Virus record (IMG/VR): IMGVR_UViG_3300038465_000091 | Location: 1-64,000 of that record | Length of the DNA: 64,000 nucleotides | Direction: 5' to 3' (one strand) | Part shown: positions 3,767 through 64,000 of the stretch, one piece after another | Layout: every line of letters starts with the position of its first letter | How positions within the stretch are numbered: position 1 is the stretch's first letter | Notes under the pieces: generated by a model | Told to the model about the DNA's origin: nothing | The model's database searches: none | The model's input: the letters and a program-made list of their open reading frames with translations, nothing else | Program-made: the position numbers and the translations under genes

Positions 3767-6394
3767 TTATCCCATACCCTCGCCGCTACCTTCTGGACCT
3801 TCGTCATCCATTTCGGCCTCAATCGCGTTCAGGTCGAGACCCTTCGTGATGCGCTTGCCGAGATCGGTGTTGGTCATGAGCCAGTCACCCACGGAGTTGT
3901 AGATGTTGCTCAAAAGCTCGTTAAACTTCGAGTCCTTGACGGTGAACATCGCGTCTTCTAGTTCTCGCTTCGCATCCTCTGGATCGATATCTAAGAACTC
4001 GTAGATAATATCCACTGGCAACGATCCCTTACTATATAAATTGAAAAGCATATCGTAAATATCGCCTTGATCGCGAAGCGCCATGCGACTAAAGGAGATT
4101 TTGGGATATATCCAGCGGGGACGGCCATACTTGTCCATCTCGTAATATCCGCGTTTTTGGCTGTAAGGTTTGAAAATCTGCTCCTCGATAACGTATGTCA
4201 AGAGATCACGGAACTGGGCATAGGACGTTTCCATCAATTGCAGTTGCACGTGGTTGCCTGAGTACATGCCCTCACCAATGAGGATTTCAGGCGACAGGCC
4301 AAGACCGATTGCCAAGTCGGAGTTCGTGTGCTGCCACTCAGCGTCGAGCGAGAGCAGACGACCTTCGGAACCAATCTCATCCCATCTACATTCGTAATTG
4401 ACCACGACGGAATAATCGGGATCGGCGATAGCTTCGTCGATGTGGGCGCGTAAGGCAATAACTTCATTCGCTGGAATGTCAGGGGCTACAATCAAACGCT
4501 TTGGCGTCATGTTACGGGATGCCAACGTGCTCTGCACCTGACGCAGCTTCTCGCGGTAGATAACCGTGCGGATGCAGCGTTGCAGGATCGAGCGGCCATG
4601 CAGTTCGTAGCCGCTCTTCTTGCGGGCGAAGTGGATGACGTAAGAGCCTTGGAACGGGTCGTTGTTCAGCGGAATCTTGCCTTCCGTCTGAATCACGTCC
4701 TTCACTTGGTTCGGGACATCAGGATCATCCATGTAGGCTTGCTTCTGAGCCTCGGGTGGTTTGTAGTAGATCGTCGGACCATCCACCATCGTGCCCTCGT
4801 TGGTGATCTCGATCTGCTCAGGCGGAAGAATCTGAATGCGATCAGGTCCCTCGTAATCCTTATTCTCGATGTGGCTGAAGAGTTCCAGTTCTTCGCGCTT
4901 CTTCTCACGAATTTCCTTCAATTCTTCGAGCAGTTCTTTCTTCTTTTCGAGCAACTTGAGGAGGTGCTTCATTTCCATCAACTCACGCTGTGCCGAAATC
5001 GTGGCACCCATGGCGATAGCGTCCTTCACGCCCCCAGCGGCATCAGCGGGAGTAATCGGACCACCTCCACCGCCGCCTCCACCACCCATTGGGGCACCGC
5101 CGCCCATACCTTCAACGTCGCCAAGACCGCCCTCACCTAACGGGGCACCTTCGCCGCCTGCCGCTGGGTCACCAGCAGCGGGGTCGCCCGCAGGGGCGTC
5201 TGCGCCCGGAGGCGTACCGCCCCCAGCATCACCCGTAGGTGGTGCCGCAGCGGGTGCGGCCGGAGCGGGTGGTTGAGCAACTTTGGACATTTCGGCTAAG
5301 ATTTGAAGCGGGTAAGTATCGTCACCTTTTTCGTTACGGATAAGCTTCGCCAGCTTGTCGTTAGTCTCCGAAGCCAAAATCATCTTGGCGAGTTTCTTCG
5401 GGGCAATGCCTATGACCTTGGCAAACTTACGAGCACCCTTGTTGAGTTCTTTACGGGTCGCCTCGATCTTAACCGCGACTTTGGCAAGGTCTTTGATAAT
5501 GCTGTCGGCCCCGAAATCGAAATCAATGCCCGCAGCCTTGAGTTCATCAAACACTGAAGCGCGTTTCTTGATCCACGAAGAACGCTTCTCAGGTTGGAGG
5601 TATTCCAAAATCTTATCCGCCGTACCGCCTTCGGGTGGGTGGAAAGCTCCATCTCTGCTACCCGCTTCGGTGCTGTCGCCGCCACGTTTGCCTTCCTTTT
5701 CAAGAATTTCCTTGGCTGCCGAGCATGGTTCAATGTCTTCGGGGTCTTCGATGAATAGGAAGGTCTCTCCAATGCACCAGTACTCTCTGGCCGCATCGAT
5801 GATGACTTGAAACAGGCGGGTGCGGTTCATAAACCGCTGGAAATCGTCGTACACATAATCGGCGTACTCTTCGGACGAGCACTTCGGTTTCTCTGCCGTC
5901 ATCTTACTGACGGGGAGTTCCGTGTGCATATCGATTGCGCGACCGACGATTGGGTCACGATCATACGCCAGACGATAGAAACGAAGTTCTTCTGCACGGG
6001 ACGCAGGAAGCTCAAGGGCATCAACTGGAAACTCGTAAGAGTAGTAGCCGATGTTATTCGAGTCTTGGATATCGGCAGCGCCCAAACCGCCGTCACTGAA
6101 AAGACCAGCAGCCGTTTTAGCCGCCTCGTACATGCCCCAGCCAGAGTTTGGGTTGGTGCTTACGGTGCCGCTACGTGCCGCGCCTTGGATAATACGGAGC
6201 TTGTTCATCGCCGAATCTTCGACGATCTCGCCCTTATTGTTCATCTGCGTGTACTTGCCAGCCGATGCGAATTCCTTGTTGCCTACTTTGGCAACCTTCC
6301 GCTTTACCATGGACGGTGAGATGCGCGTATTTGCGCCTCGCTGACGGGTAGTAACCCGCTTACCTTGACCGTCGTCTGCTGTCTTATTTGCCAT
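3767..6394 (-). CDS. Probable portal protein with a large internal insertion
   Basis: 875 aa. YRLAYDRDPIVGRAIDMHTELP and HFARKKSGYELHGRSILQR segments resemble large-phage portal proteins (recognised from memory, not searched). Confidence 0.55.
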   Translation of the reverse strand: MANKTADDGQGKRVTTRQRGANTRISPSMVKRKVAKVGNKEFASAGKYTQMNNKGEIVEDSAMNKLRIIQGAARSGTVSTNPNSGWGMYEAAKTAAGLFSDGGLGAADIQDSNNIGYYSYEFPVDALELPASRAEELRFYRLAYDRDPIVGRAIDMHTELPVSKMTAEKPKCSSEEYADYVYDDFQRFMNRTRLFQVIIDAAREYWCIGETFLFIEDPEDIEPCSAAKEILEKEGKRGGDSTEAGSRDGAFHPPEGGTADKILEYLQPEKRSSWIKKRASVFDELKAAGIDFDFGADSIIKDLAKVAVKIEATRKELNKGARKFAKVIGIAPKKLAKMILASETNDKLAKLIRNEKGDDTYPLQILAEMSKVAQPPAPAAPAAAPPTGDAGGGTPPGADAPAGDPAAGDPAAGGEGAPLGEGGLGDVEGMGGGAPMGGGGGGGGGPITPADAAGGVKDAIAMGATISAQRELMEMKHLLKLLEKKKELLEELKEIREKKREELELFSHIENKDYEGPDRIQILPPEQIEITNEGTMVDGPTIYYKPPEAQKQAYMDDPDVPNQVKDVIQTEGKIPLNNDPFQGSYVIHFARKKSGYELHGRSILQRCIRTVIYREKLRQVQSTLASRNMTPKRLIVAPDIPANEVIALRAHIDEAIADPDYSVVVNYECRWDEIGSEGRLLSLDAEWQHTNSDLAIGLGLSPEILIGEGMYSGNHVQLQLMETSYAQFRDLLTYVIEEQIFKPYSQKRGYYEMDKYGRPRWIYPKISFSRMALRDQGDIYDMLFNLYSKGSLPVDIIYEFLDIDPEDAKRELEDAMFTVKDSKFNELLSNIYNSVGDWLMTNTDLGKRITKGLDLNAIEAEMDDEGPEGSGEGMG

Positions 6395-11200: not shown

Positions 11201-11826
11201 CCCAGATCGGCCTTGGGGTCATTGATGTACGCGAGGGACTGCACGTCTTCGAAGTGCGGATAACCGCGTAGATTGATGCCCAGACACAGACGTATGACTT
11301 CGCGGTCAAATTTCGCGTTGTAGAAAATCAGATGGCAGCGGTCGAAGAGGTATTGGAGGATGCGACGTGCGGCTTCACGGGGGACGTTCTTGCCCCTCTC
11401 GTGATTGATCGGAACATAGATGCCCTCAACACCGTCCGCGCTCAAGCAGACACCAGCGATCTCAACCTTGACTTCGTAGGTCAACTCATACGAGCCGTCT
11501 GGTTGCTCCTGCATGTCGATCAGGATTCGAGTATCGAGACCATTGCCTTCGGTGTCTACCGCGAGAGCGGGGGACGTTTCTTTGCCGTATGTGTGGTGAC
11601 GAGACTTGTCCGCGAGCAGATTGTCTACCCACGCTTGAAGGGCTTCTTCCGTATCCAGCAGTTTGAAGGCTTTCTCAGCCATCCACGGCTTCTTGATCTT
11701 CTCAATGTCTAGCTCGCGAAGACGAGCCCGATACATGGAACGGAGATCGGACGGCGGCTTTGGTTTCTTGACCTTCTTGGTCCGCTTGAGCTTGACCTCG
11801 CCCGTGTCCTGTTGAATCTTTGCCAT
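8215..11826 (-). CDS. polA: Family A DNA polymerase with 3'-5' exonuclease and a long C-terminal extension
   Basis: Exo DTE/FYNAKFD/YAAGDA; motif A DYSNIEMR; motif B RDIAKIINFALLYG; NAPIQG; motif C VHDE. Confidence 0.95.
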   Translation of the reverse strand: MAKIQQDTGEVKLKRTKKVKKPKPPSDLRSMYRARLRELDIEKIKKPWMAEKAFKLLDTEEALQAWVDNLLADKSRHHTYGKETSPALAVDTEGNGLDTRILIDMQEQPDGSYELTYEVKVEIAGVCLSADGVEGIYVPINHERGKNVPREAARRILQYLFDRCHLIFYNAKFDREVIRLCLGINLRGYPHFEDVQSLAYINDPKADLGDKKQKYTGSAGGLKALSKTVLGIEQIEIEEISVVKAVVCPLTKKPLCNCTEEEIKALSQQDKKHGKKNVYAPFTWVPTDIALWYAAGDAICTWLLWQKMKDLARSRRLPHRIDHELVDSIIFVERQRFLIDTERHGRTAKWHQGLLDSLYNKLRNLALEAGFKEPADEEGKVNEDDKFNPGSGPQLQKLLYGVKGYEIEHWTKKAGAPSCDSDAIDDLVKDHPDDEFLKTLMEFKKYGALHPANLRYDPKDLSARIHLRQSTVAGGRLSASGGDFEEDGGFGMNPQGVKKVEPEKQWRVHGNVLSPDEIPFDEMEEYTEADLDPSCFHLEKGVIKKAKGIIKNHIGQYTGYAICLVPKCTSCAEKYGILIKDTQMDANEVVNLRVLMCSPPGWTWFSVDYSNIEMRAAANMSGEPKFIDEFLKGKGDFHTLTASNVFPEFNDPNTSADKKKGFRDIAKIINFALLYGGTEHAIYLNMKEKDPNITKEDCKKMVDKYWEGVPKFAEFVQMKQTKAKTEMICETSTGRVINFNSALEALHLHKPFDEERHNLYEYYGNNREAEQAKKAGNDADYQKYKGRADRLWKDPDSGVRNAMEYNKFIGKVQRIAVNAPIQGICGDFMRIALNRLRKWVESDPLIQSVFRLHTSVHDEVDFSVKNEYVPFILPRVTRLMKLRKYHEQMKWPVPIECDAEYGHSWDVDWNATDPKKAYAWTHVEGMERYLPDLFDSKSVKAMLNSLTSGDPIKVGKVKAWMIENLHPRAVGRVHDTDVYETINALDKAKNPKETQRILIAILQLHEYWTIDHVPDGQDATMETLEQYEQRVGLTAKDRGMMPSFGYSGAIPLDAKVIRPTLLILGEEVQAELPLITVSENEITATIPATIDQAAIAEVAHRMNAETMREMESERAAKDKAEAEKHAEAVANLPKILAELHGTEPIYELIDEVQTNAELQRQLKEALGRGPNTVNIKIGGKVVTVTGKKLDHVPEEFLKQVTLA

Positions 11827-12023
11827 TATTCCTCTAACTCGTACAAGGCGTTGAGGAAATCCAGAAGATAGTCGTCAACTGGTTCATCAATTTGCAAGTT
11901 TTGAACATGGAGCAATCCGCCTTCTTGATCCGCTCGACAGTGTAAACAAACACAGCCTTCATACACAAAATCGGTATGTCGGCATGGAGCACCAGTGATG
12001 GGGTCGGAGCACTTGACTGCCAT
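11826..12023 (-). CDS. Small Cys-rich hypothetical protein
   Basis: Start and stop overlap with neighbours (TAATG coupling). Confidence 0.6.
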   Translation of the reverse strand: MAVKCSDPITGAPCRHTDFVYEGCVCLHCRADQEGGLLHVQNLQIDEPVDDYLLDFLNALYELEE

Positions 12024-12289
12024 TAGAACCTCCTTAACGCCAGCCCACTCATGCCCGGACGCTTGACTTCAGTCAACACGCCGTCCTTCAATTCAACGTC
12101 GGCGTATAGCTCGAACATCGCCCGCGCCTGACCCTTGAAACACCGCTTGATGCAATTGAATCCAACGGGTTTTTGGATGATCCTCGTACCGCCGTTGGCA
12201 CCTGTGGCGGCTATGGGCTTGGTGATGGTGTCGTACTTCTCTTTGTCGGCGAAAATCTTACCGCAGTAGATGCAGCGTGGTTTTAGCAT
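12023..12289 (-). CDS. Hypothetical Zn-finger protein
   Basis: CIYC...CIKRC; coupled to the downstream gene. Confidence 0.6.
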   Translation of the reverse strand: MLKPRCIYCGKIFADKEKYDTITKPIAATGANGGTRIIQKPVGFNCIKRCFKGQARAMFELYADVELKDGVLTEVKRPGMSGLALRRF

Positions 12290-16260: not shown

Positions 16261-16340
16261 TGGTTGCAGAGGCTTGGAGTCGCACCAAGTACACCGTTCG
16301 GCTTATGAGGCCGATGAGCCGCAGTTGCTCGATCCCTGCT
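16261..16340 (-). tRNA. Atypical tRNA-Met(CAT)
   Basis: TCGGC-CTCATAA-GCCGA arm; T-loop TGCGACT; encoded CCA; irregular acceptor stem. Confidence 0.6.
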
Positions 16341-18307: not shown

Positions 18308-18383
18308 TTTAGCGTGGTGGGATTCGAACCCACGTCCTTCCCCGTCAATAGGGGTTGCCGATCCGCTGGGCGTCACGCTAAAG
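18308..18383 (-). tRNA. Degenerate tRNA-like gene (loop TATTGAC, nominal anticodon TTG)
   Basis: Perfect acceptor TAGCGTG/CACGCTA and GTGGG-TTCGAAT-CCCAC T-arm; A33; no encoded CCA. Confidence 0.5.
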
Positions 18384-20116: not shown

Positions 20117-20129
20117 ACATTGTAAAATT

Positions 20130-20216
20130 TGGTCGGGGTGGGGAGATTCGAACTCCCAGTGATCTTATCTCCCGCTTCCAAAGCGGGTCGGCTCCCAACT
20201 ACCGATTTACACCCCG
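20130..20216 (-). tRNA. tRNA-Pro(TGG) with enlarged variable region
   Basis: CCCGC-TTTGGAA-GCGGG; ~13-nt variable region; CCA. Confidence 0.87.
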
Positions 20217-53037: not shown

Positions 53038-56000
53038 TTACACCTGTCCAATCACGACATAATTGAAAATTACGTTAGCTAAGGGAGCGGTGCCAACATT
53101 AACGGTGAAACCCGTCCACGCATTCGTTGCGCCTTGGTATGTAATCCAAATCGGATTCGCCGCGCCCAGATTTGATGTCGGAGTCACAACCAATATAGGC
53201 TGTCCCGCGCCTGTGTAATTGTTTACAAAACTGTACACAACGGTCGTGTTGCCTGAAAGCAGCGTCACCTGACCTGCGAAGTCCGTGTTGGCCGCTGGCG
53301 AATCCGCTTCGATAACGTTGTTTGGGCTAGTGTACCCATACGGAGTGTGACGAATAGCCTGAAGGCGACTGCCCACATCCACAGCACCGAGAACGTTCTG
53401 CTCTTGCGGGTTGACCTCATAAATAGCAAACCGCTTCGTTGCGCTGCCAACGTTCTGTCTCTGAATATAGATGTTGAACGAGTTGGTAATCGTACCCGAT
53501 GGGTCGCCGTTAGAAGTCAAAAATATACCATAGGCGTTGTCCATGTGGCTTCCACTGACAGACTGACCGATGTCCAGAACAAGTGCGGCGGCATTCGGTA
53601 CAGACGCGCCGTGGAAGTTGTTGACACTGATCGCCGCGCCAACGAGCCCGTACCACGGGCTTGATCCCGGTGAAGTTATGTTACCCGTGTTTTCATGATT
53701 TGTTCTGACGCGCAATCCAGTGACGCCTTGCGGAAACACCTGTGCTCCACTCACAGTAATTCCCGTTGATTGAATTGCCTGTACAACATCGAGGCCAGAA
53801 ATAAACTGATTGCCTGTGAACGGATTGCACTGCGAGAGGATACTGGCGCTATTGACTACCGAGTAACTGATTCCAGACCCGGAGTCCGCTGTCGGCCCGT
53901 AATCCGCATGAGTAAATGCTGCTTCGAACTGCGTACCTGACAGTCCTGTGGGAAGCACTACCACTGTGTGACGGTTCAAAAAGGTTGCCGCAGACAAGCC
54001 TGCAAACAGGCCAATTTCAACTCTATCTCCAGCGGACAGTGTGTTGACTGCTTGGAATGTCGCGATGTTGCTGGTAATCTGAATGCTCGTGATGCTCACA
54101 AACTGCGACGGCAGCGAATTTGTGGTGACAAACCTGTACCCAGAATAGGCTTGATAGGTGGCTAACTCTGAAAGCGTTGTCGGATCGAGTTGGTAGTCGG
54201 GCTTGCCTCCAAGTATCACCCCGCTTGTTTCGCCGACACCTAGAACGGTGAGAGCAGCGACGGCACCACCAGCTAAAGGCGTAATGTTCACGTCACCAAA
54301 GCTGTCTACCGAAACTACGGGGGTGCTGGGGGTTCCGTTTGAAAACCAATCTTGAATATCGCTTGCTGAGGCGTCACCCGTAACAGACAATGTTACGAAC
54401 GTGCCCGCTCCTCCACCACCCCCTGCGGGAATAGGAGCCGCTGAGAATAACCCCGTGCTCGCGTTATAACCAGTGAGGTACTCGTATTCTGGAGGTGAAC
54501 CCGCCAGAGTTGGGGCGAACGTTTGAGCTAAAACAAGGGCGACCCACTGAGTTCCCGTTACCGTGGAGCTAAGTACTTGTCCGCTGGTTCCGACCGAACT
54601 CGTGCTGTCCTTCAACGTGCCAGTCAAAGCTATGTTTGCGACAGCCAACGTACCACTTGCATCATTGCTCTGCCCGATAGACAGCGTGCCGGTGGGGTTC
54701 TCATAAATAGTGGTTCCAGTCGTGAGCTTTAGAGAGCGTTGGGAAGCAAAGTACGTTTGGCTCGGAGTGATGTCCAAAGCTATTGCTCCGTTGACGACCA
54801 GTGCTAACCCCCCGGCACCGTTGTTCACTCCCATTCCGTAATTTGTTTTACCAGCAACGGTAAAAGAGAACGCTGGGTTGGTAAGCGTTCCCGCTGTGGA
54901 TGCTTCAAACGTTGAAGCCTGTACTATTCCGCTTGCGTTTATCGCCGCAGCGGTCGCAGTACCAGTGAAAGCTGGACTGGCAAGTGTGGTGATAACGCCG
55001 GTGCTGCCGTATACGGATGTAACGCCTCCTCCGCCGCCTCCTGTCGCGGGCTGCCATACGGGTAGCCCAGCAACTACAGTCAATACCTGACCCGTTGTAC
55101 CGATGGGCAAACGCAGTGGGCCAAGCACTGGGGGAGAACCCGCCAGCCCTTCGTAAATCATATCCCCATCAGCGGTCATAGGATTAACGAAGGTGCCGCT
55201 AAGTATGCCCTCCAAGGAGACGCCCGAATCCTGTGTGTTACCAAGTTCATCGAATGTGACAATATCGCCAGCAGTGATGGCACCAGACCCAGATGGGACC
55301 GTGACGGCGGTAGCGGCTGAAATAGAGACTGCCCCATTGCCCCCACCCACGGCAAGAGCGCGACCTGTCAGGATGCCGCCGCCCAACGTGATCGAGGCAT
55401 ACGCCAAAATGTTTCCAACCATAGTGCTTGTGGCAACCGATGTGAATGAGCTTCCGACGCACCAAACTACGTTGGCTGCTTGAGCACCGTTGACCAAAAG
55501 AATTGACGCCCCGCTTTCGAGCGTGACGGTGGAGGCTGCGATAAACACAAAGATCGCGTTCGGATCGCCCTGAGCGTCAAGGGTGATCGTAGTCGGGATG
55601 TCCAATGCTCCACCAGAGAACACGCCCGCGTGATACACGCCGACGCCGCCCCCACCATCGTTCGTGGATAGGTTGGCGAGGCCCGTCTGAGTCGGGGTCA
55701 GTCCGCTGTAGTAGGTATACGCCGCCTGACCCGCAGTACGTGCCGCAGGAGCGTCGGTGTTGTCCACCGTAGCGGTAGGTGGGTTGAACCCCGTAATACT
55801 CATGGTCGGGGCAGAACCAATCTTGCCGCCTGTTATTGAAGTCGCGGGCGCTGCGTTTGTGATCCCGCTGTACGCCAGCAAAGCGTAGTTCGCGGACGAG
55901 CCGAGTTGCGTAGTGACTGGGGACGGAGGCGGTGCACCACTCGTCAACTGAACAAAAGCACCTGTGCCCTGCACGCTGCAAATCTGGGACGTTGCGAGAC

Positions 56001-56238
56001 AGCCCGAGATTTGAGTGAAATTAGTGCTGCCCACAAACAGTGACGAATCGATGACGCCACTAGGGTTGAGAACCACGGGAACGCCCGCTGATGCGGCCCC
56101 TAGCGACTGTACTGTAACACCATCGACAGCCGTAACGATATCAATCAGGTTTGATCCTGTTTGATTCGGCACAATCGGTGCTGCCACATCCTGATTAGGG
56201 TTTATGTTAAAGACGCAGATTCGCGTAGGACCATTCAT
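53038..56238 (-). CDS. Tail-fibre/virion protein with DUF3494 ice-binding-like domain
   Basis: Gly/Thr/Ser-rich modules; LGSSANYALLA.SGITN, GVY, TITLDAQGDPNAIFVF, NGAQAANVVW.VGSS, GNILA..SITL..G.LTGRALA motifs. Confidence 0.8.
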   Translation of the reverse strand: MNGPTRICVFNINPNQDVAAPIVPNQTGSNLIDIVTAVDGVTVQSLGAASAGVPVVLNPSGVIDSSLFVGSTNFTQISGCLATSQICSVQGTGAFVQLTSGAPPPSPVTTQLGSSANYALLAYSGITNAAPATSITGGKIGSAPTMSITGFNPPTATVDNTDAPAARTAGQAAYTYYSGLTPTQTGLANLSTNDGGGGVGVYHAGVFSGGALDIPTTITLDAQGDPNAIFVFIAASTVTLESGASILLVNGAQAANVVWCVGSSFTSVATSTMVGNILAYASITLGGGILTGRALAVGGGNGAVSISAATAVTVPSGSGAITAGDIVTFDELGNTQDSGVSLEGILSGTFVNPMTADGDMIYEGLAGSPPVLGPLRLPIGTTGQVLTVVAGLPVWQPATGGGGGGVTSVYGSTGVITTLASPAFTGTATAAAINASGIVQASTFEASTAGTLTNPAFSFTVAGKTNYGMGVNNGAGGLALVVNGAIALDITPSQTYFASQRSLKLTTGTTIYENPTGTLSIGQSNDASGTLAVANIALTGTLKDSTSSVGTSGQVLSSTVTGTQWVALVLAQTFAPTLAGSPPEYEYLTGYNASTGLFSAAPIPAGGGGGAGTFVTLSVTGDASASDIQDWFSNGTPSTPVVSVDSFGDVNITPLAGGAVAALTVLGVGETSGVILGGKPDYQLDPTTLSELATYQAYSGYRFVTTNSLPSQFVSITSIQITSNIATFQAVNTLSAGDRVEIGLFAGLSAATFLNRHTVVVLPTGLSGTQFEAAFTHADYGPTADSGSGISYSVVNSASILSQCNPFTGNQFISGLDVVQAIQSTGITVSGAQVFPQGVTGLRVRTNHENTGNITSPGSSPWYGLVGAAISVNNFHGASVPNAAALVLDIGQSVSGSHMDNAYGIFLTSNGDPSGTITNSFNIYIQRQNVGSATKRFAIYEVNPQEQNVLGAVDVGSRLQAIRHTPYGYTSPNNVIEADSPAANTDFAGQVTLLSGNTTVVYSFVNNYTGAGQPILVVTPTSNLGAANPIWITYQGATNAWTGFTVNVGTAPLANVIFNYVVIGQV

Positions 56239-56828
56239 TATCTAGCCACTCCTGTACGAGCTAATCGATTTTCTCTAAACTGCCGCAACGCCGCCGTCAT
56301 ACATACCCACTCTTCATAGGTGTAGCGGTGTGCTTTACCGTGGTTACAAACCCCACAGCAAACGACAAGGTTGCTTTTGACGTATTCCAAACCATTGTCC
56401 TTACGGTCGAGATAGTACCTTCCATAGGTTTGCCTGTCGCTATAAGGCATCCATGTGATGTGAGCCCCGCAATAATGACATTCGTTGATTTTCGTGAATT
56501 CTAAAAATTCCCCGAACGATAAATCAACGACTCTGACTTTTCTGCGTGTGCGATGAACAAGAGCGTTGTAAGCGTGCTCAAATGGAAGGAATTCACTTCG
56601 CTTGGCTTCCGAAGTACGCTCCCGTTGCAAACAGCCGCAACTTTCAGTGTTGGGTCGTGCCCCCTTCCTTCCCAAATTAGTCCCAAAAACTTCTGTCAAG
56701 TTGCCGCAGACGCACTCACACGAATACTTGGCGGGCTTCCCCTTGTCCGATACCCGAGCAAGTACCTTCAGTCTACCGAACGGCTTTCCGATCTTGGTGT
56801 CTATTTTCATCTGTTCCTCGCAGGCCAC
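56238..56828 (-). CDS. HNH homing endonuclease
   Basis: IGKPFGRLKV, CHYCG...LDRKDNGLEYVKSNLVVCCGVCNHGK. Confidence 0.88.
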   Translation of the reverse strand: MACEEQMKIDTKIGKPFGRLKVLARVSDKGKPAKYSCECVCGNLTEVFGTNLGRKGARPNTESCGCLQRERTSEAKRSEFLPFEHAYNALVHRTRRKVRVVDLSFGEFLEFTKINECHYCGAHITWMPYSDRQTYGRYYLDRKDNGLEYVKSNLVVCCGVCNHGKAHRYTYEEWVCMTAALRQFRENRLARTGVAR

Positions 56829-57472
56829 TCGACCCGTTTATGCTTGATCGCCGCTAATTCAGGAAATTCTTCTTCCGCTTCGAAATCTTGTGCCACGGCA
56901 ACGGGGTTCGGTGGTGTGTGTTCAAATTTGGGGTTGTTCCCCAGATCGTCCTGTGCTCGATCATTCCCACTGGTGCCGCCCTCTTCGTGGACTTCCCCTG
57001 ATGTATCATAACCATAAGCTAGTTTGTTTCTTGACCCACGCTTCTTATTGGCATCCCGAGTCAGTGTATCCAACACGCGATGTAGCTTCATCATAGCGTA
57101 GCTCTGATACACGGTCGCCATACCGTAATCACCCGCCTTACCGTAGGAGCTTGCGATGTCAAAATCGTGGTGGGAGTTCGTTACGTCGCGGGCGATGTCC
57201 CTGCGGGTGCTAAGTTCTTTGGAAACGTCTTCCAGCCCCAGCACAAGCTCCCGAAGATGAGTTTCGGTCTGGGTGTAAAGCTCTTGATCCTGTTCGGGAG
57301 CCTTCAGGCGATCCCAAACGGCGTAGATTTCCATGTAGGTGTCGCGGAGATAGTTCACGTCCTGCGGCCAAGAGGCCCCAGATTGCAGCAAAGCACTGGA
57401 AAATTGCGGGGTTGTCTGAAGAGGGGCAACCGCCGAGGCAGCTAATTTGGTGATGGGAAGACGGACAGGCAT
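56807..57472 (-). CDS. Hypothetical protein
   Basis: 221-aa ORF. Confidence 0.7.
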   Translation of the reverse strand: MPVRLPITKLAASAVAPLQTTPQFSSALLQSGASWPQDVNYLRDTYMEIYAVWDRLKAPEQDQELYTQTETHLRELVLGLEDVSKELSTRRDIARDVTNSHHDFDIASSYGKAGDYGMATVYQSYAMMKLHRVLDTLTRDANKKRGSRNKLAYGYDTSGEVHEEGGTSGNDRAQDDLGNNPKFEHTPPNPVAVAQDFEAEEEFPELAAIKHKRVEWPARNR

Positions 57473-57499
57473 CTGGGCTCCTGTCTAAGAGCCAGAAAG

Positions 57500-58129
57500 T
57501 CAGATTCGATAGGACTGCCAAACCTCGGTGTCGAGTTCGCGGACGGTCTTGCCCCGCTTTTTGGCTTCGGCGATAAAGGCTTGCTCTAGTTCAAGATACC
57601 GCCTGCCTGCCTGAGGGGTGCTTTTGGGGGCGTTGTACCCCTGAAGCTTCAACCATTTGAGGATGTGAGTATCCAGCGGGACGCAGTTGGCCTCGGGCTC
57701 GTAGTACAGGATGGTCATGCGAGCGGTTTTGGGGCCGATACCCGGAATTTTCTCCAGCGATTCGATACTGACATGAGCGAGGTCGATGTTGACGGCGGCG
57801 GGGAACGCCTTGCGGTAGAGCTTGTACTTGCCGAGTTTGTGTTTGCGAAGGTAATAGTTAAGGGTGTTGTAATAGATGGCGTGCTTGACGATCTCGAACG
57901 GCGAGACCCCCTCATAACCCGGCATGGTGCTGCGGATGTCATCCAGAAAGGCGCGGAGCTTTTTCTCCGTACCCTTCGCACTCTTGCCCGCCACGCAGAT
58001 GCCGAAGAGAATCCACCACTCAAGCTGGAGTTTGGTCATCCGTTTTGGCAAGTTGGTTGGGTCCACCGCTGCTGTCGCTACCATCTTCCTTAACCTCACT
58101 CCACGTTCCGTCAACGATCTGGTTGACAA
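57500..58129 (-). CDS. HhH-GPD DNA glycosylase-like protein
   Basis: LEKIPGIGPKTA helix-hairpin-helix and catalytic PLDTH; probable start MVATAAV. Confidence 0.85.
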   Translation of the reverse strand: MSTRSLTERGVRLRKMVATAAVDPTNLPKRMTKLQLEWWILFGICVAGKSAKGTEKKLRAFLDDIRSTMPGYEGVSPFEIVKHAIYYNTLNYYLRKHKLGKYKLYRKAFPAAVNIDLAHVSIESLEKIPGIGPKTARMTILYYEPEANCVPLDTHILKWLKLQGYNAPKSTPQAGRRYLELEQAFIAEAKKRGKTVRELDTEVWQSYRI

Positions 58130-58668
58130 AAACTTTGAACTTGAAACCCTTGCGTTGCCAATCAGGTTCCACTTGAATCTGGGCGTTCGGACCCAATTCC
58201 TGAATCACACCCTCAGGAATGAAGACTTCCCAGCCGCCATCGATCCTATAACCGAACTTGCGGATGAGCAGCCCTAATGCAGCTAGGGGGTCTTGTTGCA
58301 TCAGTGACCGAACTCCTCGACGATGCCGAGAACCTCGGCGAGGATCAAAAGCGTTGCCGCCACGTAAATCACGGGGTGGTGATCCACGGCGTAGAGGAAA
58401 AGGTATCCGCCAATGCGGAAGAAACTCTTGATGTAGCTGATTTTTGCGTGTTCGCTCGCCATTATCGCACCAACCCCCGACCGTGGGCGTTGGATTCGGT
58501 CGAGCCCTGCGACAGGATGACATCCACAGCCACACGAGCGTGGAAGCGAGCCGCCGCTGGGCTCATGTTCGCCGCACGCATTACCTTGATCTGCTCGTTC
58601 AACAGCTTGTGACGAAACTTCCGACGTGCGGCCTTGCGTGCACCATCACCACGATGTTCTCCTGTCAT
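58020..58668 (-). CDS. Three small hypothetical genes (MQQDPL.. ending 58020; MASEHAK.. membrane protein 58301-58462; 58462-58668)
   Basis: Coupled start and stop codons. Confidence 0.5.
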
Positions 58669-58708
58669 ATTTCGAAGACCCTCGCTTTGTATAATACCAC
58701 AAAATCGC

Positions 58709-59449
58709 TCATAGTTCGACGATTACTGGCGGATACGGCGGATACCCATGTGCCGCCCGCTCGTTAGGATACCCGTATGGGCGACAAATCACTTCCGTCT
58801 CACCGAGCAAATAGTTGCAATCGGAATGCGTGTGCCCGTGAAACCAGTATCTCGGCTGCTTGACCTCGATCAAAGATGTCTCATCTGACAGAAAGAAGCG
58901 ATTGAGTGAATTACCGAGAAATTGCTGGGGCGTGCTTCGTGGGTGGGGTAGATGATGGCTCAGCACCACGGTCTGAGGCGTCACCAGCCGCATTGCAGCC
59001 TCACGGAAAGCCGTATTCTCCGCGTACACCCACTTACGAAAGTCCTTAATCACAACGAAGTCCGACATCGTGCTCTCGTACAACTGATTCAAAGGTTGGT
59101 CGGGAAACCACATCGTGCCGCCAAAGAAATGCACGCCGTCGAGGGTCACGTCGCTGTTTTGTAGCCAGACGAAGTTCCTCGGCATGTAGGACTTGAGAAT
59201 AACCTCGGCCTGTTCGCGAGTGCCGCCGTAGTATTCATGGTTGCCCGTGGTGTAAATGACGTGCCGCGCCTTTGTGCTGAGGAAGGCCAACACCTGCTGG
59301 ACAATCTTCCCGTTCTGGCGGCAGGGGACAACGATGTCTCCGGGCAGGGCGAGGAAATCCAGATCGGGGGCGAAGTCCAGCCGATTGAGAACGGACAGCG
59401 GCATGTCATAGAACTCAAGATGCAAGTCCGAAACAATCTGGAGCTTCAT
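58709..59449 (-). CDS. Calcineurin-like metallophosphoesterase
   Basis: SDLHLE, PGDI, GNHEYY, SHH, HGHTH motifs. Confidence 0.92.
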   Translation of the reverse strand: MKLQIVSDLHLEFYDMPLSVLNRLDFAPDLDFLALPGDIVVPCRQNGKIVQQVLAFLSTKARHVIYTTGNHEYYGGTREQAEVILKSYMPRNFVWLQNSDVTLDGVHFFGGTMWFPDQPLNQLYESTMSDFVVIKDFRKWVYAENTAFREAAMRLVTPQTVVLSHHLPHPRSTPQQFLGNSLNRFFLSDETSLIEVKQPRYWFHGHTHSDCNYLLGETEVICRPYGYPNERAAHGYPPYPPVIVEL

Positions 59450-59502
59450 ACTTTATTATACCGCAAAATGCAAGGATTTACCTCACTCATCCGTTTATAT
59501 AA

Positions 59503-59724
59503 GTGGAGGCAACCATGTGCGACTGTGGATGTAAGGAAGGGAATCTGTGCAACCTGCACCAATTCATCTGGGAAACTCGAATGAAGGCTCAGCAAGTGCT
59601 AGACAACATGCCGCCTCCTACGCGATGGCAGCGATTCAAGCAGTGGGGGACGACGGGCGGTTCGGATTTCGATTGGGTAACGTTCTTGGTGGTGCTGGTG
59701 TTGTTGAAAGCAATCTTTGGATAA
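59503..59724 (+). CDS. Small membrane protein, hypothetical
   Basis: C-terminal TM helix; an internal ATG behind GGAGG is the likely start. Confidence 0.55.
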   Translation: MEATMCDCGCKEGNLCNLHQFIWETRMKAQQVLDNMPPPTRWQRFKQWGTTGGSDFDWVTFLVVLVLLKAIFG

Positions 59725-59726
59725 AT

Positions 59727-59772
59727 TGGAGGCGTTTACGGGAGTCGAACCCGTCATTTTTAGTTGAAAGTC
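59727..59772 (-). pseudogene. 3' half of a tRNA (Glu-like, loop CTTTCAA)
   Basis: T-arm ACGGG-TTCGACT-CCCGT and CCA end present; the 5' half is replaced by the HNH promoter. Confidence 0.65.
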
Positions 59773-59785
59773 AGTATTGTAGTAC

Positions 59786-60283
59786 ATGGAAACCCAAACC
59801 TGTACTAAATGCCGCGACCCCAAATCTGTAGATGAGTTCGCCTTCAAAAGTAAGGCGGCGGGCAAGCGCAACTCGTGGTGCAAGTCATGCCAAAAGCCCT
59901 ACAAAGACCAGCATTACCAAAACCACAAACAAGTGTACATCAAGAAAGCTCACGAGTATCGAGCGGATTACAAAGCGCGGATTTATGCTCTCCTCGCCGA
60001 ATACTACAAGCAACACCCGTGTGTCGATTGCGGGGCGGATGACTTCATTGTTTGTCAATCTGACCACGTGAGGGGCAAGAAGTTTGAGGGTATCTCAAGG
60101 CTTATTCAACAGGATGCTTCGTGGGAAAGAATACTAGAAGAACTTAAGAAGTGTGAGACTCGATGCGCTAATTGCCACATGCGAAAAACAGCCAAGCAAT
60201 TTGGTTGGTACAAAGATTTGGTAGCGTACAGGGGAATCGAACCCCTCATCATTCGCTTGAAAGGCGAAGGTCCAAACCGATAG
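59786..60283 (+). CDS. HNH endonuclease (tRNA-array family), antisense
   Basis: CVDCG...SDHVRGKK...KCETRCANCH; the C-terminus overlaps tRNA-Glu on the opposite strand. Confidence 0.88.
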   Translation: METQTCTKCRDPKSVDEFAFKSKAAGKRNSWCKSCQKPYKDQHYQNHKQVYIKKAHEYRADYKARIYALLAEYYKQHPCVDCGADDFIVCQSDHVRGKKFEGISRLIQQDASWERILEELKKCETRCANCHMRKTAKQFGWYKDLVAYRGIEPLIIRLKGEGPNR

Positions 60284-60294
60284 ACGGGTACGCC
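60219..60294 (-). tRNA. tRNA-Glu(TTC)
   Basis: TTCGC-CTTTCAA-GCGAA; CCA. Confidence 0.92.
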
Positions 60295-60310
60295 ATTGGA
60301 CTTCTAAAAT

Positions 60311-60385
60311 TGGTGCGCCGTGAGGGATTCGAACCCCCGATCTTTTGCGTGTCATGCAAACGATTTGCCACTAATCTAACAGCGC
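60311..60385 (-). tRNA. tRNA-Val(GAC)
   Basis: TTTGC-ATGACAC-GCAAA; CCA. Confidence 0.9.
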
Positions 60386-60386
60386 G

Positions 60387-60484
60387 TGTACCCGAGAGGG
60401 ATCGAACCTCCGACCTGCCTCCAGCAACCCATGCCGAAGCATAAAAGCTGATGGAGACCGCTCTGCCGGTTGAGCTACAGGCAC
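60387..60484 (-). ncRNA. tRNA body with a ~30-nt structured insert in the anticodon loop
   Basis: Normal acceptor, D and T arms; GTCTC/GAGGC stem encloses CAGC/GCTG and an ATGC-TTCG-GCAT hairpin. Confidence 0.65.
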
Positions 60485-60562
60485 AAACAAAAACTGGTGG
60501 AAAGGAAATCCCGGCAAGGATTTTACATTGCTACATGTCTGCAACAACCCACCCATAAAAAT

Positions 60563-60639
60563 TGGTGCGGCTTGGACTGAATTTCACGTCCGACCCCTCC
60601 CCCGTTATAGGAGTGCTCTGTTCCTGAGCTAAAGCCAAC
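60563..60639 (-). tRNA. Degenerate tRNA, nominal Val(AAC)
   Basis: D-arm GCTC..GAGC; CTCCT-ATAACGG-GGGAG; aberrant T-loop; CCA. Confidence 0.5.
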
Positions 60640-60642
60640 ATC

Positions 60643-60718
60643 TGGTGGACCTAGTGGGATTCGAACCCACGACCTCCGCAGTGCGAGCGCAGCGTTCTCC
60701 CAACTGAACTACAGGCCC
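60643..60718 (-). tRNA. tRNA-Ala(CGC)
   Basis: Loop CTCGCAC; G3:U70; CCA. Confidence 0.93.
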
Positions 60719-60852
60719 AAAACTTTAGACGGTGAGATTCGATACTCACATAAGCGCATCGACTAGCGATATAGCCGATCTCATCATTCAATGAGCTTAG
60801 GACGCTATTTATTTTTCGCCCTCTCTACGGGCGCTTAACTTACGTCTAAACT

Positions 60853-60928
60853 TGGTGCACCTTGAGGGATTCGAACTCTCGACTCCCACCGTGTGAAAGT
60901 GGTACTCTGGCCGCTGAGTTAAAGGTGC
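60853..60928 (-). tRNA. tRNA-Val(CAC)
   Basis: CCACT-TTCACAC-GGTGG; CCA. Confidence 0.92.
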
Positions 60929-60996
60929 AAAATGGTGGAGGCACGTTAAGGGCTTTCTTGCTCGCCCACCCTTACGGTCGTTCACCCCCGTAAACT

Positions 60997-61073
60997 TGGT
61001 AGCGCCTGCGGGAGTCGAACCCGCCGTCATTCGAGTGAGAGTCGAAGGTCCAAAGCCGATAGACGGAGACGCC
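60997..61073 (-). tRNA. tRNA-Glu(CTC)
   Basis: TTCGA-CTCTCAC-TCGAA; CCA. Confidence 0.92.
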
Positions 61074-61143
61074 ACAATCATATAATTGGCCTCTACAGTG
61101 AAATTCTTCACGATTTTGGCCGTTTTATACGACGTAATAAAAT

Positions 61144-61219
61144 TGGTGGACCTAAGGGGGCTCGAACCCCTGACCTCTCGAATGCCATTCGAACGCTCTC
61201 CCAACTGAGCTACAGGCCC
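61144..61219 (-). tRNA. tRNA-Ala(GGC)
   Basis: Loop ATGGCAT; G3:U70; CCA. Confidence 0.93.
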
Positions 61220-61227
61220 AACGACAG

Positions 61228-61301
61228 TGACGCAGTGTATCGGATTTGAACCGATGTTTCCCGCAGGCGTCCTCAACCAGCCTAGACGAACACCTATCAC
61301 C
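61228..61301 (-). ncRNA. tRNA-like RNA lacking a proper anticodon arm
   Basis: Glu/Asp-type D-arm GTCT..AGGAC and T-arm ATCGG-TTCAAAT-CCGAT are separated by only ~13 nt. Confidence 0.55.
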
Positions 61302-61338
61302 ATCTGTGCGCGTGTACATCGCGCAGTCTTTCAAAACT

Positions 61339-61413
61339 TGGAGCGGAACACGGGGCTCGAACCCGCGACCTGTTCGTTGGCAACGAACCGCTCTACCACT
61401 GAGCTAGTTCCGC
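61339..61413 (-). tRNA. tRNA-Gly(GCC)
   Basis: Loop TTGCCAA; GCGGAAC acceptor; U73; CCA. Confidence 0.95.
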
Positions 61414-61659
61414 AAACTTTCAAAAGCAAAAGCATGTGTGTCCCAGTCGGTCGATAGGATTACCAGCCCCTACCACAAGCGGTTCGGGCTTTCGCCGCAA
61501 CCGCCGAACCTCAATCTGAGGTCGTCGAGTCTCGCAGCCGAAGCTACGACGTTTTTCTACCCACTTAAGGGAGTCCACGCGGATACACACAACTCATTTG
61601 GGGAGGATGGGTGTTAATCCAGTTTTGACCTCGTGCCAACACACGAGCCTCCCCCGATC

Positions 61660-61734
61660 TGGAGCGAGCAACGGGAATCGAACCCGTCTCATCGGCTTGG
61701 AGGGCCGGGGCACCGCCAGTTATACCTTACTCGC
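61660..61734 (-). tRNA. tRNA-Gly(TCC), C33 variant
   Basis: Loop CCTCCAA; U73; CCA. Confidence 0.82.
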
Positions 61735-61745
61735 TTAAAATATTC

Positions 61746-62158
61746 GTGTTGAACCTGTAGCCGGGATTTTGTCCGCCAGCTTACGCCAGTTGGACGACCA
61801 TTCCTCTAGGCGTTGCATCGCTACAACGCTCAAGCACCCTACCCGCTGATTACCCGCCTCTTGCGAAGCGAACGGATCGAACACAATCCTGCTCAGCCTA
61901 TTTGGGCTTGCTGCACGTGGAGATTGCTCGTTTCACCCGAACTGAATCGGCTCGTCTCTGTAGCTCTAATCGTCAACACCCTTGCGGGTGCCGCCCAGCC
62001 GTTAGCTGGCACGCTGTTCTTTGCAGTCCCGAACTTCCTCCCCTGCGCTCAACGCCGGACTTGGTTGGGTATTTCACATCAACACTGCCGATGCGAATCT
62101 TACACGCTTCCAAGCACAGGACGTATATCTACGCAGCAGCGGTCGTCCAATTCAACAC
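61746..62158 (-). ncRNA. rnpB: RNase P RNA (bacterial type A-like)
   Basis: P1 GTGTTGAA/TTCAACAC; P2 ACGACCG/TGGTCGT; P4 strands GAGGAAGTTCGGG and ACAAAATCCCGGCTA; GGGTGAAACG and GAGCAA core motifs. Confidence 0.9.
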
Positions 62159-62234
62159 AAATTTTCAAAGACCTAATAGACGATGCAAAAGCTTTGTTCT
62201 GCACTCAATCACCCGATAAACTGGGCGATGATTT

Positions 62235-62309
62235 TGGAGCACCCGGTCGGTGTCGAGCCGACTCATAATGGTTTTGCAGACCATTGCGTTCCCGTTTCGC
62301 CACGGATGC
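62235..62309 (-). tRNA. tRNA-Cys(GCA)
   Basis: ATGGT-CTGCAAA-ACCAT; U73; CCA. Confidence 0.9.
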
Positions 62310-62313
62310 AAAT

Positions 62314-62694
62314 TTAAATGCGTTTCAATACCTGTGCTTCTTCAAAAGTCGCTAGGCGGTGATGATTAGCACAAAGCACATCACACTTTGCGGCTTCTCG
62401 CTTCACTCGTACAAGGGACCAACCCTTCTTACGGGTTTCAGATAAATTCAGTTCTTTTGTCGCCCTATCGCGATGGGCAAAATCTAAACAGACTGGATGT
62501 TCCCGCCATCCGCAAACTTTACAACCCATCTCCATTTTGTAAGCGTCCAGCCATTGACAAATAACGGCTATCCGCTTTTTATCATTCTTCCGCACCGCTT
62601 TCAAGTGTCGTGCCTTCCGAACTGGATCGGCGTAATACCGCTTCCAGTACCCAGCACGATATTCCTTGCGCTTCTTGCAATCCTTCAACGGCAT
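62314..62694 (-). CDS. HNH endonuclease (tRNA-array family)
   Basis: CKVCG...CLDFAHRD...KCDVLCANHHR. Confidence 0.88.
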   Translation of the reverse strand: MPLKDCKKRKEYRAGYWKRYYADPVRKARHLKAVRKNDKKRIAVICQWLDAYKMEMGCKVCGWREHPVCLDFAHRDRATKELNLSETRKKGWSLVRVKREAAKCDVLCANHHRLATFEEAQVLKRI

Positions 62695-62699
62695 AAATT

Positions 62700-62773
62700 T
62701 GGCGGGGATACGGAGAATTGAACTCCGATTTTATGATAGACAGTCAAATGTCCTACCCTTGAACGATATCCCC
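62700..62773 (-). tRNA. tRNA-Asp(GTC)
   Basis: Loop CTGTCTA; G73; CCA. Confidence 0.9.
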
Positions 62774-62785
62774 GTTCTTAAATTT

Positions 62786-62860
62786 TGGTGGACACGGGGG
62801 GATTTGAACCCCTTCTTTCACTTTGCAAGAGTGACGCATTCCCAGTTATGCTACCGGCCC
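62786..62860 (-). tRNA. tRNA-Ala(TGC)
   Basis: TCACT-CTTGCAA-AGTGA; G3:U70; irregular lower acceptor stem; CCA. Confidence 0.82.
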
Positions 62861-63075
62861 ATTTTTGCTGGTTTCGCGACACTCTTCGTGCCGTGTACCA
62901 GATCAAACTCTAATTGCCGAACCACCATCAGGTCCATCTTGAACAGGGCTTCATCCTCGGTGTCGGCAGATGCGACTAGGCCGAGGGTGGGGTGAACCAC
63001 TTTGAATCCCCAATCATACCTCTCGACCTCCACGGTCGTTACCAGCTTGACGATGCGTTGTCTGTCGCGTTTCAT
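62851..63075 (-). CDS. Small HicB-like protein
   Basis: SD GGAG; W.F.V.HPTLGLVASADTEDEAL resembles the HicB N-terminal domain. Confidence 0.55.
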   Translation of the reverse strand: MKRDRQRIVKLVTTVEVERYDWGFKVVHPTLGLVASADTEDEALFKMDLMVVRQLEFDLVHGTKSVAKPAKMGR

Positions 63076-63090
63076 CTTCTCTCCGAATCT

Positions 63091-63169
63091 TGGTACGCCG
63101 AGAGGGACTCGAACCCCCGATAATACTTGCTTGTAGGGCAAGTGGTTTCGCCGCTCACGCCATCGGCGT
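63091..63169 (-). tRNA. tRNA-Val(TAC), C33 variant
   Basis: CTTGC-CCTACAA-GCAAG; irregular D-stem; CCA. Confidence 0.8.
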
Positions 63170-63180
63170 AAATTTACCGC

Positions 63181-63214
63181 AAAAACAAAAAGGACGCCTT
63201 TTTAGGGGCGTCCT
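63181..63214 (-). terminator. Attenuator terminator upstream of the Val/Ala/Gly/Asp/Glu/Cys array
   Basis: AGGACGCC-CCTAAAAA-GGCGTCCT followed by TTTTGTTTTT, about 11 nt before tRNA-Val. Confidence 0.92.
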
Positions 63215-63238
63215 CGGAATTCGTTGGTTTTAGGCTAT

Positions 63239-63385
63239 TTAGCCACCCCAACCATCCAAGGACACCATATCTCCTACCGGCGCCGCGTCAGCGGCGACAG
63301 TACCGCGTTCGGCTGTACAAGCCGACAGGACCACGCCTGCACAGACGACCGTCACGACAACACCGTCTTGGAGAATGGAGTTCAT
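63239..63385 (-). promoter_or_regulatory. Leader peptide ORF (MNSILQDGVVVTVVCAGVVLSACTAERGTVAADAAPVGDMVSLDGWGG)
   Basis: 48 aa: 10 Val, 7 Ala, 7 Gly, 4 Asp, 2 Cys, 1 Glu; its 3' end forms a 12-bp antiterminator arm; TATTGT element upstream. Confidence 0.85.
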
Positions 63386-63700
63386 AAGCGTCTCTATTTA
63401 CAATACTCGGTATTCAGGAAACTTGCAACAACTATTTTTCAGAAAAGTTTGAGGGCGCAACCACGGACGAACCGTGTGATCTTCTGTCTTGCTACGGCTA
63501 TCAGCCGCCTTCCGAACTGCGCCCCGATGAAAATACATCGGCTACAGTAACCCTGCACGTTGAACTGGTGCCAGCTAGAGTTCGGGACCGTTGCCACCGT
63601 TGCACCTGAGGTACACCGGATTATGCGGGTCATGACTCCCGTGACAGTGGGTTTTAGCCCTAGCCAGCCGTGCACAGTATGCAGCCGAATCTCAAAATTT

Positions 63701-63775
63701 TGGTGGACCTAGAGGGAATTGAACCCCCGACATCAGCCTTGCAAAGGCTGCGTTCTCCCGCTGAACTATAGGCCC
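63701..63775 (-). tRNA. tRNA-Ala(TGC)
   Basis: CAGCC-TTTGCAA-GGCTG; G3:U70; CCA. Confidence 0.95.
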
Positions 63776-64000
63776 AACCCCTTTCGGACGCGGTACACGT
63801 GCTACCCGTCGTCCTTAGGGCTCCCCCTCGTGCGATCCTCATGCCCGTGACAGGGTGATTGAAGACGGGGGCTGCGGTGCATACTCTAGAACTGTCACGT
63901 CCTATTGCCTTTTACGGCAGAGCAGGGGCAGAACGCAGGCTCACATTAAGATAATACCGTAGTCTGGGGATTCTTACAAGCGGGTCGTGACTTCTTTGTA

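Follow-up and report, generated by a model that had tools for sequence, protein, structure and literature searches.

An RNase P RNA gene with a rewired P4 helix in the tRNA gene cluster of a 223-kb phage

Does this phage encode its own RNase P RNA?

RNase P is the RNA enzyme that trims the front end of every tRNA. We asked whether a phage tRNA gene cluster contains a gene for this ribozyme, and if so, whether the gene is likely to be functional. We analyzed a 64,000-nucleotide stretch of DNA ("the window"). The initial annotation of the window, made from the sequence alone, had proposed an RNase P RNA at 61746-62158, with P1, P2 and P4 pairings, some deviation from the consensus in the core motifs, and a long P3 region. 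We found that all of these proposals are correct.

A scan of the entire window against Rfam 15 at gathering thresholds gave one RNase P hit, to RF00010 (bacterial RNase P RNA, class A). This hit is on the minus strand at 62086..61741, with a score of 139.4 bits (gathering threshold 100 bits; E = 1e-42), and it covers model positions 1-367. The same hit was found in a more permissive scan of 59000-64000. The Rfam scan retains only the best-scoring member of clan CL00002 at each locus, and RF00010 was retained, rather than class B (RF00011) or an archaeal model. The two core motifs that were noted in the initial annotation, GAGGAAGUUC (62040-62031) and AAAAUCCCGGCUA (61770-61758), are both present on the minus strand and correspond to the two strands of helix P4. 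The identification as an RNase P RNA gene is close to certain.

The surrounding DNA is viral. Large minus-strand ORFs in the window are similar to a phage portal protein (phrog_16240), family-A DNA polymerase (PolA; phrog_17, 2e-80), a UvsX-like recombinase (phrog_97), and a phage helicase (phrog_2488, 6e-91). An exact-word search of IMG/VR returned three contigs, and one of these, IMGVR_UViG_3300038465_000091 (223,506 bp), is 100% identical to window 56674-64000. ARAGORN identified 27 tRNA genes in the window, all on the minus strand. The RNase P RNA lies 76 nt downstream of tRNA-Cys and 11 nt upstream of tRNA-Gly(UCC), and an HNH endonuclease gene (62314-62694, phrog_2255, 1e-19) lies just upstream of tRNA-Cys.

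Boundaries of the RNA

The 5' end that is implied by the covariance model (62086) is a decoy. In the model's alignment, P2 and part of P3 are marked as non-pairing. In L001, a relative that is about 82% identical across the neighborhood, the same model chooses a 5' end that is further upstream and scores 165.2 bits, with clean P1 and P2 helices and a 59-nt insertion in P3. When we aligned the two loci, the homologous bases in the window were GUGUUGAAUU (62158-62149), which pairs with GGUUCAACAC (61755-61746), and GGACGACC (62148-62141), which pairs perfectly with GGUCGUCC (61799-61792). The window has an extra 21-nt insertion in the tip of P3, which forms an 11-bp hairpin and happens to contain AGUGUUGA; the model mistook this for P1. 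So, the RNA is 413 nt and runs from 62158 to 61746, exactly as initially annotated, and the model's boundary is wrong by 72 nt. The score of 139.4 bits is an underestimate because the model mis-set P1 and P2. The features of the locus (all on the minus strand; locus names beginning with L are related loci from IMG/VR, metagenomes or MAGs) are:

61746..62158 (-): RNase P RNA gene, from the first base of P1 to the last base of P1. An 11-nt 3' tail (61745-61735) runs up to tRNA-Gly(UCC). The identical sequence is present on metagenome contig L082.
62149..62158 (-): P1 5' strand, GUGUUGAAUU. All 10 pairs with 61755-61746 form.
62141..62148 (-): P2 5' strand, GGACGACC. All 8 pairs with 61799-61792 are Watson-Crick.
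62042..62140 (-): expanded P3, a long irregular hairpin of ~99 nt, as compared to ~20-25 nt in close relatives (P3 is short in L043, L058, L075, and L076). The predicted fold has an energy of -34.7 kcal/mol (z = -2.27).
62061..62113 (-): conserved peripheral module within P3 (UUGGAAGCG ... CCCAACCAA, 53-nt long form), which contains the decoy AGUGUUGA.
62027..62035 (-): P4 5' strand, A-G-U-[U bulge, 62032]-C-G-G-G-A, preceded by J3/4 GAGGA. It pairs with 61766-61759.
61995..62009 (-): P8 with loop UAACG (its AAC is a candidate for the L8-P4 contact). 5 of 6 pairs covary.
61972..61994 (-): P9 with a GCAA tetraloop (candidate for the L9-P1 contact).
61931..61961 (-): J11/12 (ACAGAGA), a 4-bp mini-P12 hairpin, and J12/13 (GGGUGAAA). 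P13/P14 are missing right after 61931.
61836..61907 (-): P15-P16-P17, with the L15 GGU (61843-61841, within CGGGUAGG at 61845-61838) that binds the tRNA 3'-CCA, and an extra hairpin at 61872-61855. P15, P16, and P17 covary.
61810..61829 (-): P18 with the GNRA loop GCGA (candidate for the L18-P8 contact). 6 of 8 pairs show compensatory changes. The loop is GUGA in L001.
61771..61793 (-): P19-like hairpin between P2 and P4 (present in the window, L105, L043, L050, and L011; absent in L001, L058, and L075).
61759..61766 (-): P4 3' strand, UCCCGGCU, preceded by ACAAAA.
62235..62309 (-): tRNA-Cys(GCA), the upstream neighbor, followed by a 76-nt spacer.
61660..61734 (-): tRNA-Gly(UCC), the downstream neighbor.
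63190..63215 (-): intrinsic terminator (9-bp stem plus U-run) between a 48-aa lipoprotein-like ORF and tRNA-Val.

P5, P7, and P10/P11 are also present. The loop motifs in L8, L18, and L9 match those of the interdomain contacts of type-A RNAs (L8-P4, L18-P8, and L9-P1; PMC8457005), although the receptors, including the altered P4, cannot be judged from the sequence alone. The junctions that recognize the tRNA T-loop, J11/12 and J12/13, are invariant in 10 relatives, although this is sequence evidence only. In contrast, the stacked P13/P14 helices, which are the hallmark that separates type A from type B (PMC1874661), are absent: 43 model positions are aligned to 0 bases. P13/P14 are also absent from L001.

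A rewired P4 helix

The consensus sequence of P4 is GAGGAAAGUCCGGG ... ACAGAACCCGGCUUA, but the window has GAGGAAGUUCGGGA ... ACAAAAUCCCGGCUA. Aligned column by column with canonical relatives (columns 124-132 and 455-462 of our alignment of 7 sequences), the window has A-U, G-C, U-G, bulged U, C-G, G-C, G-C, G-C, A-U, while the consensus has A-U, A-U, G-C, bulged U, C-G, C-G, G-C, G-C, G-C. The geometry (3 bp, bulged U, 5 bp) is unchanged, and four of the eight pairs are exchanged with pairing kept (A-U to G-C, G-C to U-G, C-G to G-C, and G-C to A-U). Across all of the sequences that we collected, the two strands of P4 covary in step. The number of distinct sequences with each combination of 5' strand and 3' strand was:

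AGUUCGGGG / CCCCGGCU: 15
AGUUCGGGA / UCCCGGCU: 12
AAGUCCGGG / CCCGGCUU: 11
ACGUCCGGG / CCCGGCGU: 6
AAGUCGGGG / CCCCGCUU: 4

Rarer types follow the same rule. The bulged U, whose O4 binds the catalytic metal together with backbone phosphates (PMC3488217), is retained, although its invariance in our set of sequences was imposed by our search pattern.

The gene is maintained by selection

The altered P4, the loss of P13/P14, and a score at the low end for the family might suggest a decaying relic, such as a piece of host rnpB that was picked up along with tRNA genes and is now drifting. Also, there is an HNH endonuclease gene nearby, and in L037, an HNH endonuclease gene interrupts the RNase P gene. 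However, the RNA is the most conserved element of its neighborhood. It is 98.4% identical to L001 (365 of 371 aligned bases), and all 45 gap positions lie in the P3 tip, P19, and one base of J5/15. The adjacent spacer is just 76.7% identical and the flanking tRNAs are 86-96% identical. RNAalifold predicts 81 pairs from 7 sequences, and 47 of these have compensatory changes; for 10 sequences from the window's own subclade, 32 of 82 pairs do. In both alignments, nearly every pair in P1 shows changes on both sides with pairing kept, and 9 of 9 P1 pairs form in 26 of 27 distinct relatives with different sequences. P2 is paired in 50 of 56 cells of the 7-sequence alignment, with G-C/A-U and C-G/U-A exchanges. 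The same gene order (tRNA-Cys, RNase P RNA, tRNA-Gly) is found in many independent assemblies (L001, L058, L075, L076, L078, L082, L083, L105, and L113). We did not see relatives with disrupted P4 or P1 at neutral frequency. These data indicate strong purifying and compensatory selection, so we consider a non-functional relic to be very unlikely.

The expanded P3 of the window, L001, L078, and L113 contains a conserved module (UUGGAAGCG ... CCCAACCAA), which occurs as a 53-nt form and as a 32-nt form that is tipped by a GNRA loop. The same module is found in P12 of L075, L079, and L105 and in P9 of L050, L071, and L098, and we did not see it elsewhere. Its stems covary (CUUGG/CCAAG against GUUGG/CCAAU, and UGGC/GCCU against UGUC/GACU). 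A similar pattern in tRNA-Pro(UGG) at 20129-20181 does not indicate that the module is a tRNA fragment: the alignment is weak, the shared words follow from UGG being complementary to CCA, and the module's CUUGG/CCAAG helix covaries in L050. We interpret the module as a movable peripheral stabilizer, analogous to the use of different peripheral helices by type A and type B RNAs. We infer that it may substitute for the stabilizing role of the lost P13/P14.

RNase P RNAs in other viral tRNA arrays

A degenerate pattern for the P4 region identified 57 loci in IMG/VR. We scanned 34 of these with Rfam, and 23 loci had RF00010 hits above the gathering threshold, with scores of 118 to 277 bits, on contigs of up to 463 kb. 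Of these 23 loci, 22 have a tRNA within about 160 nt. Some of the RNAs are very small (L017 is 269 nt, L005 and L041 are 288 nt, and L057 is 295 nt). Eight loci with identical nhmmer scores, no tRNA arrays, and hits near the locus ends look like host rnpB beside prophages, and we set these aside.

Could the RNA in the window also be a cell's own rnpB, on a bacterial chromosome, a plasmid fragment, or a chimeric assembly? We searched for the window's type of P4 (GUUC) in 185,579 species-representative genomes and found two matches, in MAG bins labelled Alphaproteobacteria and Pseudomonadota. Both are on MAG contigs where the RNA sits in a tRNA array. One of these contigs, L058, has the same order of tRNA-Cys, RNase P RNA, and tRNA-Gly, and its neighboring ORFs hit PHROG families (3.5e-84 and 2e-31). 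Given also the phage proteins on the same strand and the 27 tRNAs in 64 kb, a non-viral origin is very unlikely. In metagenomes, the GUUC pattern matched 52 contigs. Counting the two MAG loci, 37 of 54 loci have two or more tRNAs, always on the same strand as the RNA. A minority of the GUUCGGGG subtype lies on contigs of 10 kb or more with few tRNAs, so we cannot claim that the entire GUUC type is viral.

We also compared the window's RNA and two canonical phage RNase P RNAs to 50,697 GenBank phage records with blastn, but we did not find a bona fide example. The hits were host DNA beside a prophage (with coaD, fdx, and an integrase), unannotated "UNVERIFIED" fecal scaffolds, or a region of the record for Microcystis phage MaAM05 that is flanked by fabI, engB, and mtgA.

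A proposed role in the maturation of phage tRNAs

The phage's tRNAs look like ordinary substrates of bacterial RNase P, which reads RCCA with the L15 GGU. 25 of the 27 tRNAs encode the 3'-CCA, most have U at -1, and many of the spacers are simply AAAUUU-like. The initial annotation suggested that the RNA might be adapted to atypical tRNA-like substrates nearby, which remains an inference that our data neither support nor refute.

The initial annotation also proposed that an attenuator at 63.2 kb would co-induce the RNase P RNA with the tRNAs. There is a strong intrinsic terminator at this location, about 20 nt upstream of tRNA-Val, and it is conserved in L001, L113, and L078 with a compensatory change in the stem. 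Transcription of tRNA-Val from upstream would have to read through it. However, the terminator is separated from the ribozyme by about 1 kb, three tRNAs, a small ORF, and the HNH endonuclease gene, and internal promoters cannot be excluded, so without transcript data, co-induction is only an inference. In a scan for sigma-70 promoters, we found 5 sites against 3.1 expected, and the only nearby site lies inside tRNA-Cys, so we did not identify a convincing promoter for the ribozyme.

We propose that this is a functional phage-encoded RNase P RNA, a derived bacterial type-A ribozyme that is made as part of the phage's polycistronic tRNA transcripts. It has the full architecture of the catalytic domain (P1-P5, P15-P18, and a P4 pseudoknot with the bulged U) and a reduced specificity domain (P7-P11 with a mini P12). 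The primary transcript may be cut in the A/U-rich spacers, which resemble RNase E sites, as inferred from the processing of tRNA operons in E. coli. As only 11 nt separate P1 from +1 of tRNA-Gly, cleavage of that tRNA by RNase P would release the ribozyme's own 3' end. We did not find RnpA (PF00825) among 75 ORFs in the window, which represents just 29% of the phage genome. Bacterial RnpA proteins are interchangeable between species (PMC4919922), so the simplest assumption is that the RNA recruits the host's protein. The resulting holoenzyme would add capacity for removing 5' leaders from the flood of phage pre-tRNAs (27 in this window alone) and would keep tRNA maturation independent of host rnpB transcription during infection. 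In the absence of activity, transcript, or end-mapping data, we consider a function as a pre-tRNA 5' endonuclease to be likely rather than established. With four normally near-invariant P4 pairs changed and P13/P14 missing, the activity of the RNA alone could be weak.

Alternatively, the RNA might fold like RNase P RNA but act mainly to capture the host's RnpA, and so redirect or throttle host RNase P, for example to favor phage precursors or to block the maturation of host tRNAs or 4.5S RNA. The rewired P4 and the reduced specificity domain might fit with this, and with no RnpA in the window, the RNA must compete for the host protein. Also, two relatives that score below the threshold (L002, 65.5 bits; L059, 62.7 bits) keep the catalytic domain and P4 but have an unalignable specificity domain. 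However, everything that is needed for catalysis and substrate docking is conserved and covaries (the bulged U, J3/4, J11/12, J12/13, and the L15 GGU), and the substrates carry the matching CCA. A pure sponge would not need these features, so we think that this explanation is unlikely.

More broadly, large phages may maintain their own lineage of RNase P ribozymes, always embedded in tRNA arrays. One branch, which includes the window, would have evolved a virus-specific P4, with unchanged geometry but half of the base pairs swapped, lost P13/P14, and gained a movable module that can sit in P3, P9, or P12. We consider this to be only slightly more likely than not. If so, this would be the first ribozyme of the core translation apparatus known to be virus-encoded, and it would imply that the 5' maturation of tRNAs is a step that phages need to control themselves.

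RNase P is a universal and essential ribozyme, and its P4 helix is treated as almost invariant. Finding it on phage genomes extends the list of translation functions that viruses carry, from tRNAs, tmRNA, and synthetases to the enzyme that matures tRNAs. It also suggests that the host's RNase P capacity, or its availability during infection, limits phages that flood the cell with their own tRNA precursors. The P4 variants are natural compensatory mutants that bear on whether geometry rather than base identity supports catalysis. The loss of P13/P14, the hopping peripheral module, and the very small relatives (269-295 nt) provide compact new scaffolds for RNA structural biology. In practice, annotation pipelines for viral contigs should scan for RF00010, although the model's boundaries can be incorrect if peripheral helices are expanded.

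Comparison to known systems

Huge phages are known to carry RNA genes related to translation, and the genomic habitat is the same: long same-strand tRNA arrays on contigs above 100 kb. In L033 and L056, tmRNA is in the same locus as the RNase P RNA, and in L022, a permuted tmRNA sits 1.3 kb from a sub-threshold RNase P-like region. A survey of huge phages (PMC7162821) reports tRNAs and tmRNAs but does not mention RNase P, and an earlier metagenomic census of RNase P RNAs does not mention phages. We did not find a description of a phage-encoded RNase P RNA in the literature that we could search, which does not prove that there is none.

Archaeal type A and minimal RNase P RNAs (such as the Pyrobaculum type) have also lost peripheral elements of the specificity domain, and archaeal type A also lacks P13/P14 (PMC4919922). 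However, the phage RNA retains P18, unlike archaeal type A, and the bacterial L15 GGU, and nothing suggests a multi-protein holoenzyme.

The bacterial type A RNAs, such as E. coli M1 RNA and Thermotoga maritima P RNA, share with the phage RNA the helix order P1-P12 and P15-P18, the P4 pseudoknot with a bulged U, the J11/12 and J12/13 motifs, the L15 GGU, and the L8 AAC, L18 GNRA, and L9 GNRA loops. The phage RNA differs in that it is encoded within a tRNA array, it lacks P13/P14, its P12 is reduced to a 4-bp hairpin, four of its eight P4 pairs are exchanged, and its P3 of ~100 nt carries a new peripheral module.

Other features of the window

We noticed a further element of about 220 nt, which is not a tRNA, between tRNA-Gly(UCC) and tRNA-Gly(GCC). 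It is conserved in L001, L011, L025, L075, L078, L105, and L113 (our labels for other loci in the comparison), and it has several hairpins, some with compensatory changes. It has no match in Rfam at E ≤ 1. It is possibly an unknown structured RNA, and it is probably one of the items that the initial annotation described as atypical and tRNA-like. Rfam's tRNA model also hits a 98-nt stretch at 39.7 bits that ARAGORN does not call, which may be a tRNA with an insertion or an intron. Two small ORFs are interleaved with the tRNAs, and neither has a PHROG hit. These features, along with three unusual tRNAs, are:

61435-61655 (-): the ~220-nt conserved element between tRNA-Gly(UCC) and tRNA-Gly(GCC)
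60387-60484 (-): the 98-nt stretch hit by Rfam's tRNA model
20130-20216 (-), 18308-18381 (-), and 16265-16339 (-): an 87-nt tRNA-Pro(UGG), and a tRNA-Gln and one tRNA-Met that do not encode CCA, unlike the other 25
63239-63385 (-): a 48-aa ORF with a lipoprotein-like signal (…LSAC…), followed by the conserved terminator
62851-63075 (-): a 74-aa ORF whose stop abuts tRNA-Ala

When we compared ORFs among 27133-59883 and 403-26111 to Pfam in batches, the hits included an RF-1 domain protein (3.7e-12), a glycine-cleavage H protein, a NADAR domain, a weak RNase_T-type exonuclease (2.6e-4), an HU-like DNA-binding protein, and a 1066-aa protein with an ice-binding-like domain (53038-56238).

RNase P-like RNAs at other loci

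The same conserved RNA module (window 62061-62113 (-); L075 2146-2198; L105 437-489; L050, another of the loci, 3794-3825) occupies P3, P12, or P9 of different RNase P RNAs, so it behaves as a peripheral element that has moved between helices.

In L037, which is from a 359,890-bp viral contig, the RNase P RNA gene (11470-12119 (-)) spans 650 nt because a 130-aa HNH endonuclease ORF (11626-12018 (-); phrog_3106, 3e-24) sits inside it. This could be an intron or a homing-endonuclease insertion in a ribozyme gene. The window's own HNH gene (62314-62694) hits the same PHROG families.

Four other loci contain RNase P-like RNAs that are below the Rfam threshold: L002 3999-4343 (+) and L059 1230-1567 (-), at 65.5 and 62.7 bits, and also L022 8808-9142 and L046 2789-3114. 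These RNAs keep P1-P4 and the 3' half, but they have an S-domain that cannot be aligned, and all of them sit next to tRNAs. The GenBank record "Microcystis phage MaAM05" (L062; MW495066.1 112323-118478) has an unannotated RNase P-like match that is flanked by fabI, engB, and mtgA, which looks like bacterial chromosome rather than a phage tRNA array.

A GOLLD RNA (RF02032, 212 bits; L046 5070-5488 (-)) lies inside the tRNA array of a 385-kb viral contig, about 2 kb from an RNase P-like region. Genes for tmRNA (L033 4074-4409, L056 7997-8332, and L022 7151-7485; one of them is permuted) lie in the same tRNA arrays as the RNase P RNA (L033 and L056) or, in L022, in the same array as a sub-threshold RNase P-like region.

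Finally, some of the RF00010 hits that are above threshold are very small (269, 288, and 295 nt) and lie inside dense tRNA arrays. These are L017 5399-5667, L005 340-627 (with the same score in L041), and L057 7338-7632, and they are candidates for the smallest bacterial-type RNase P RNAs.
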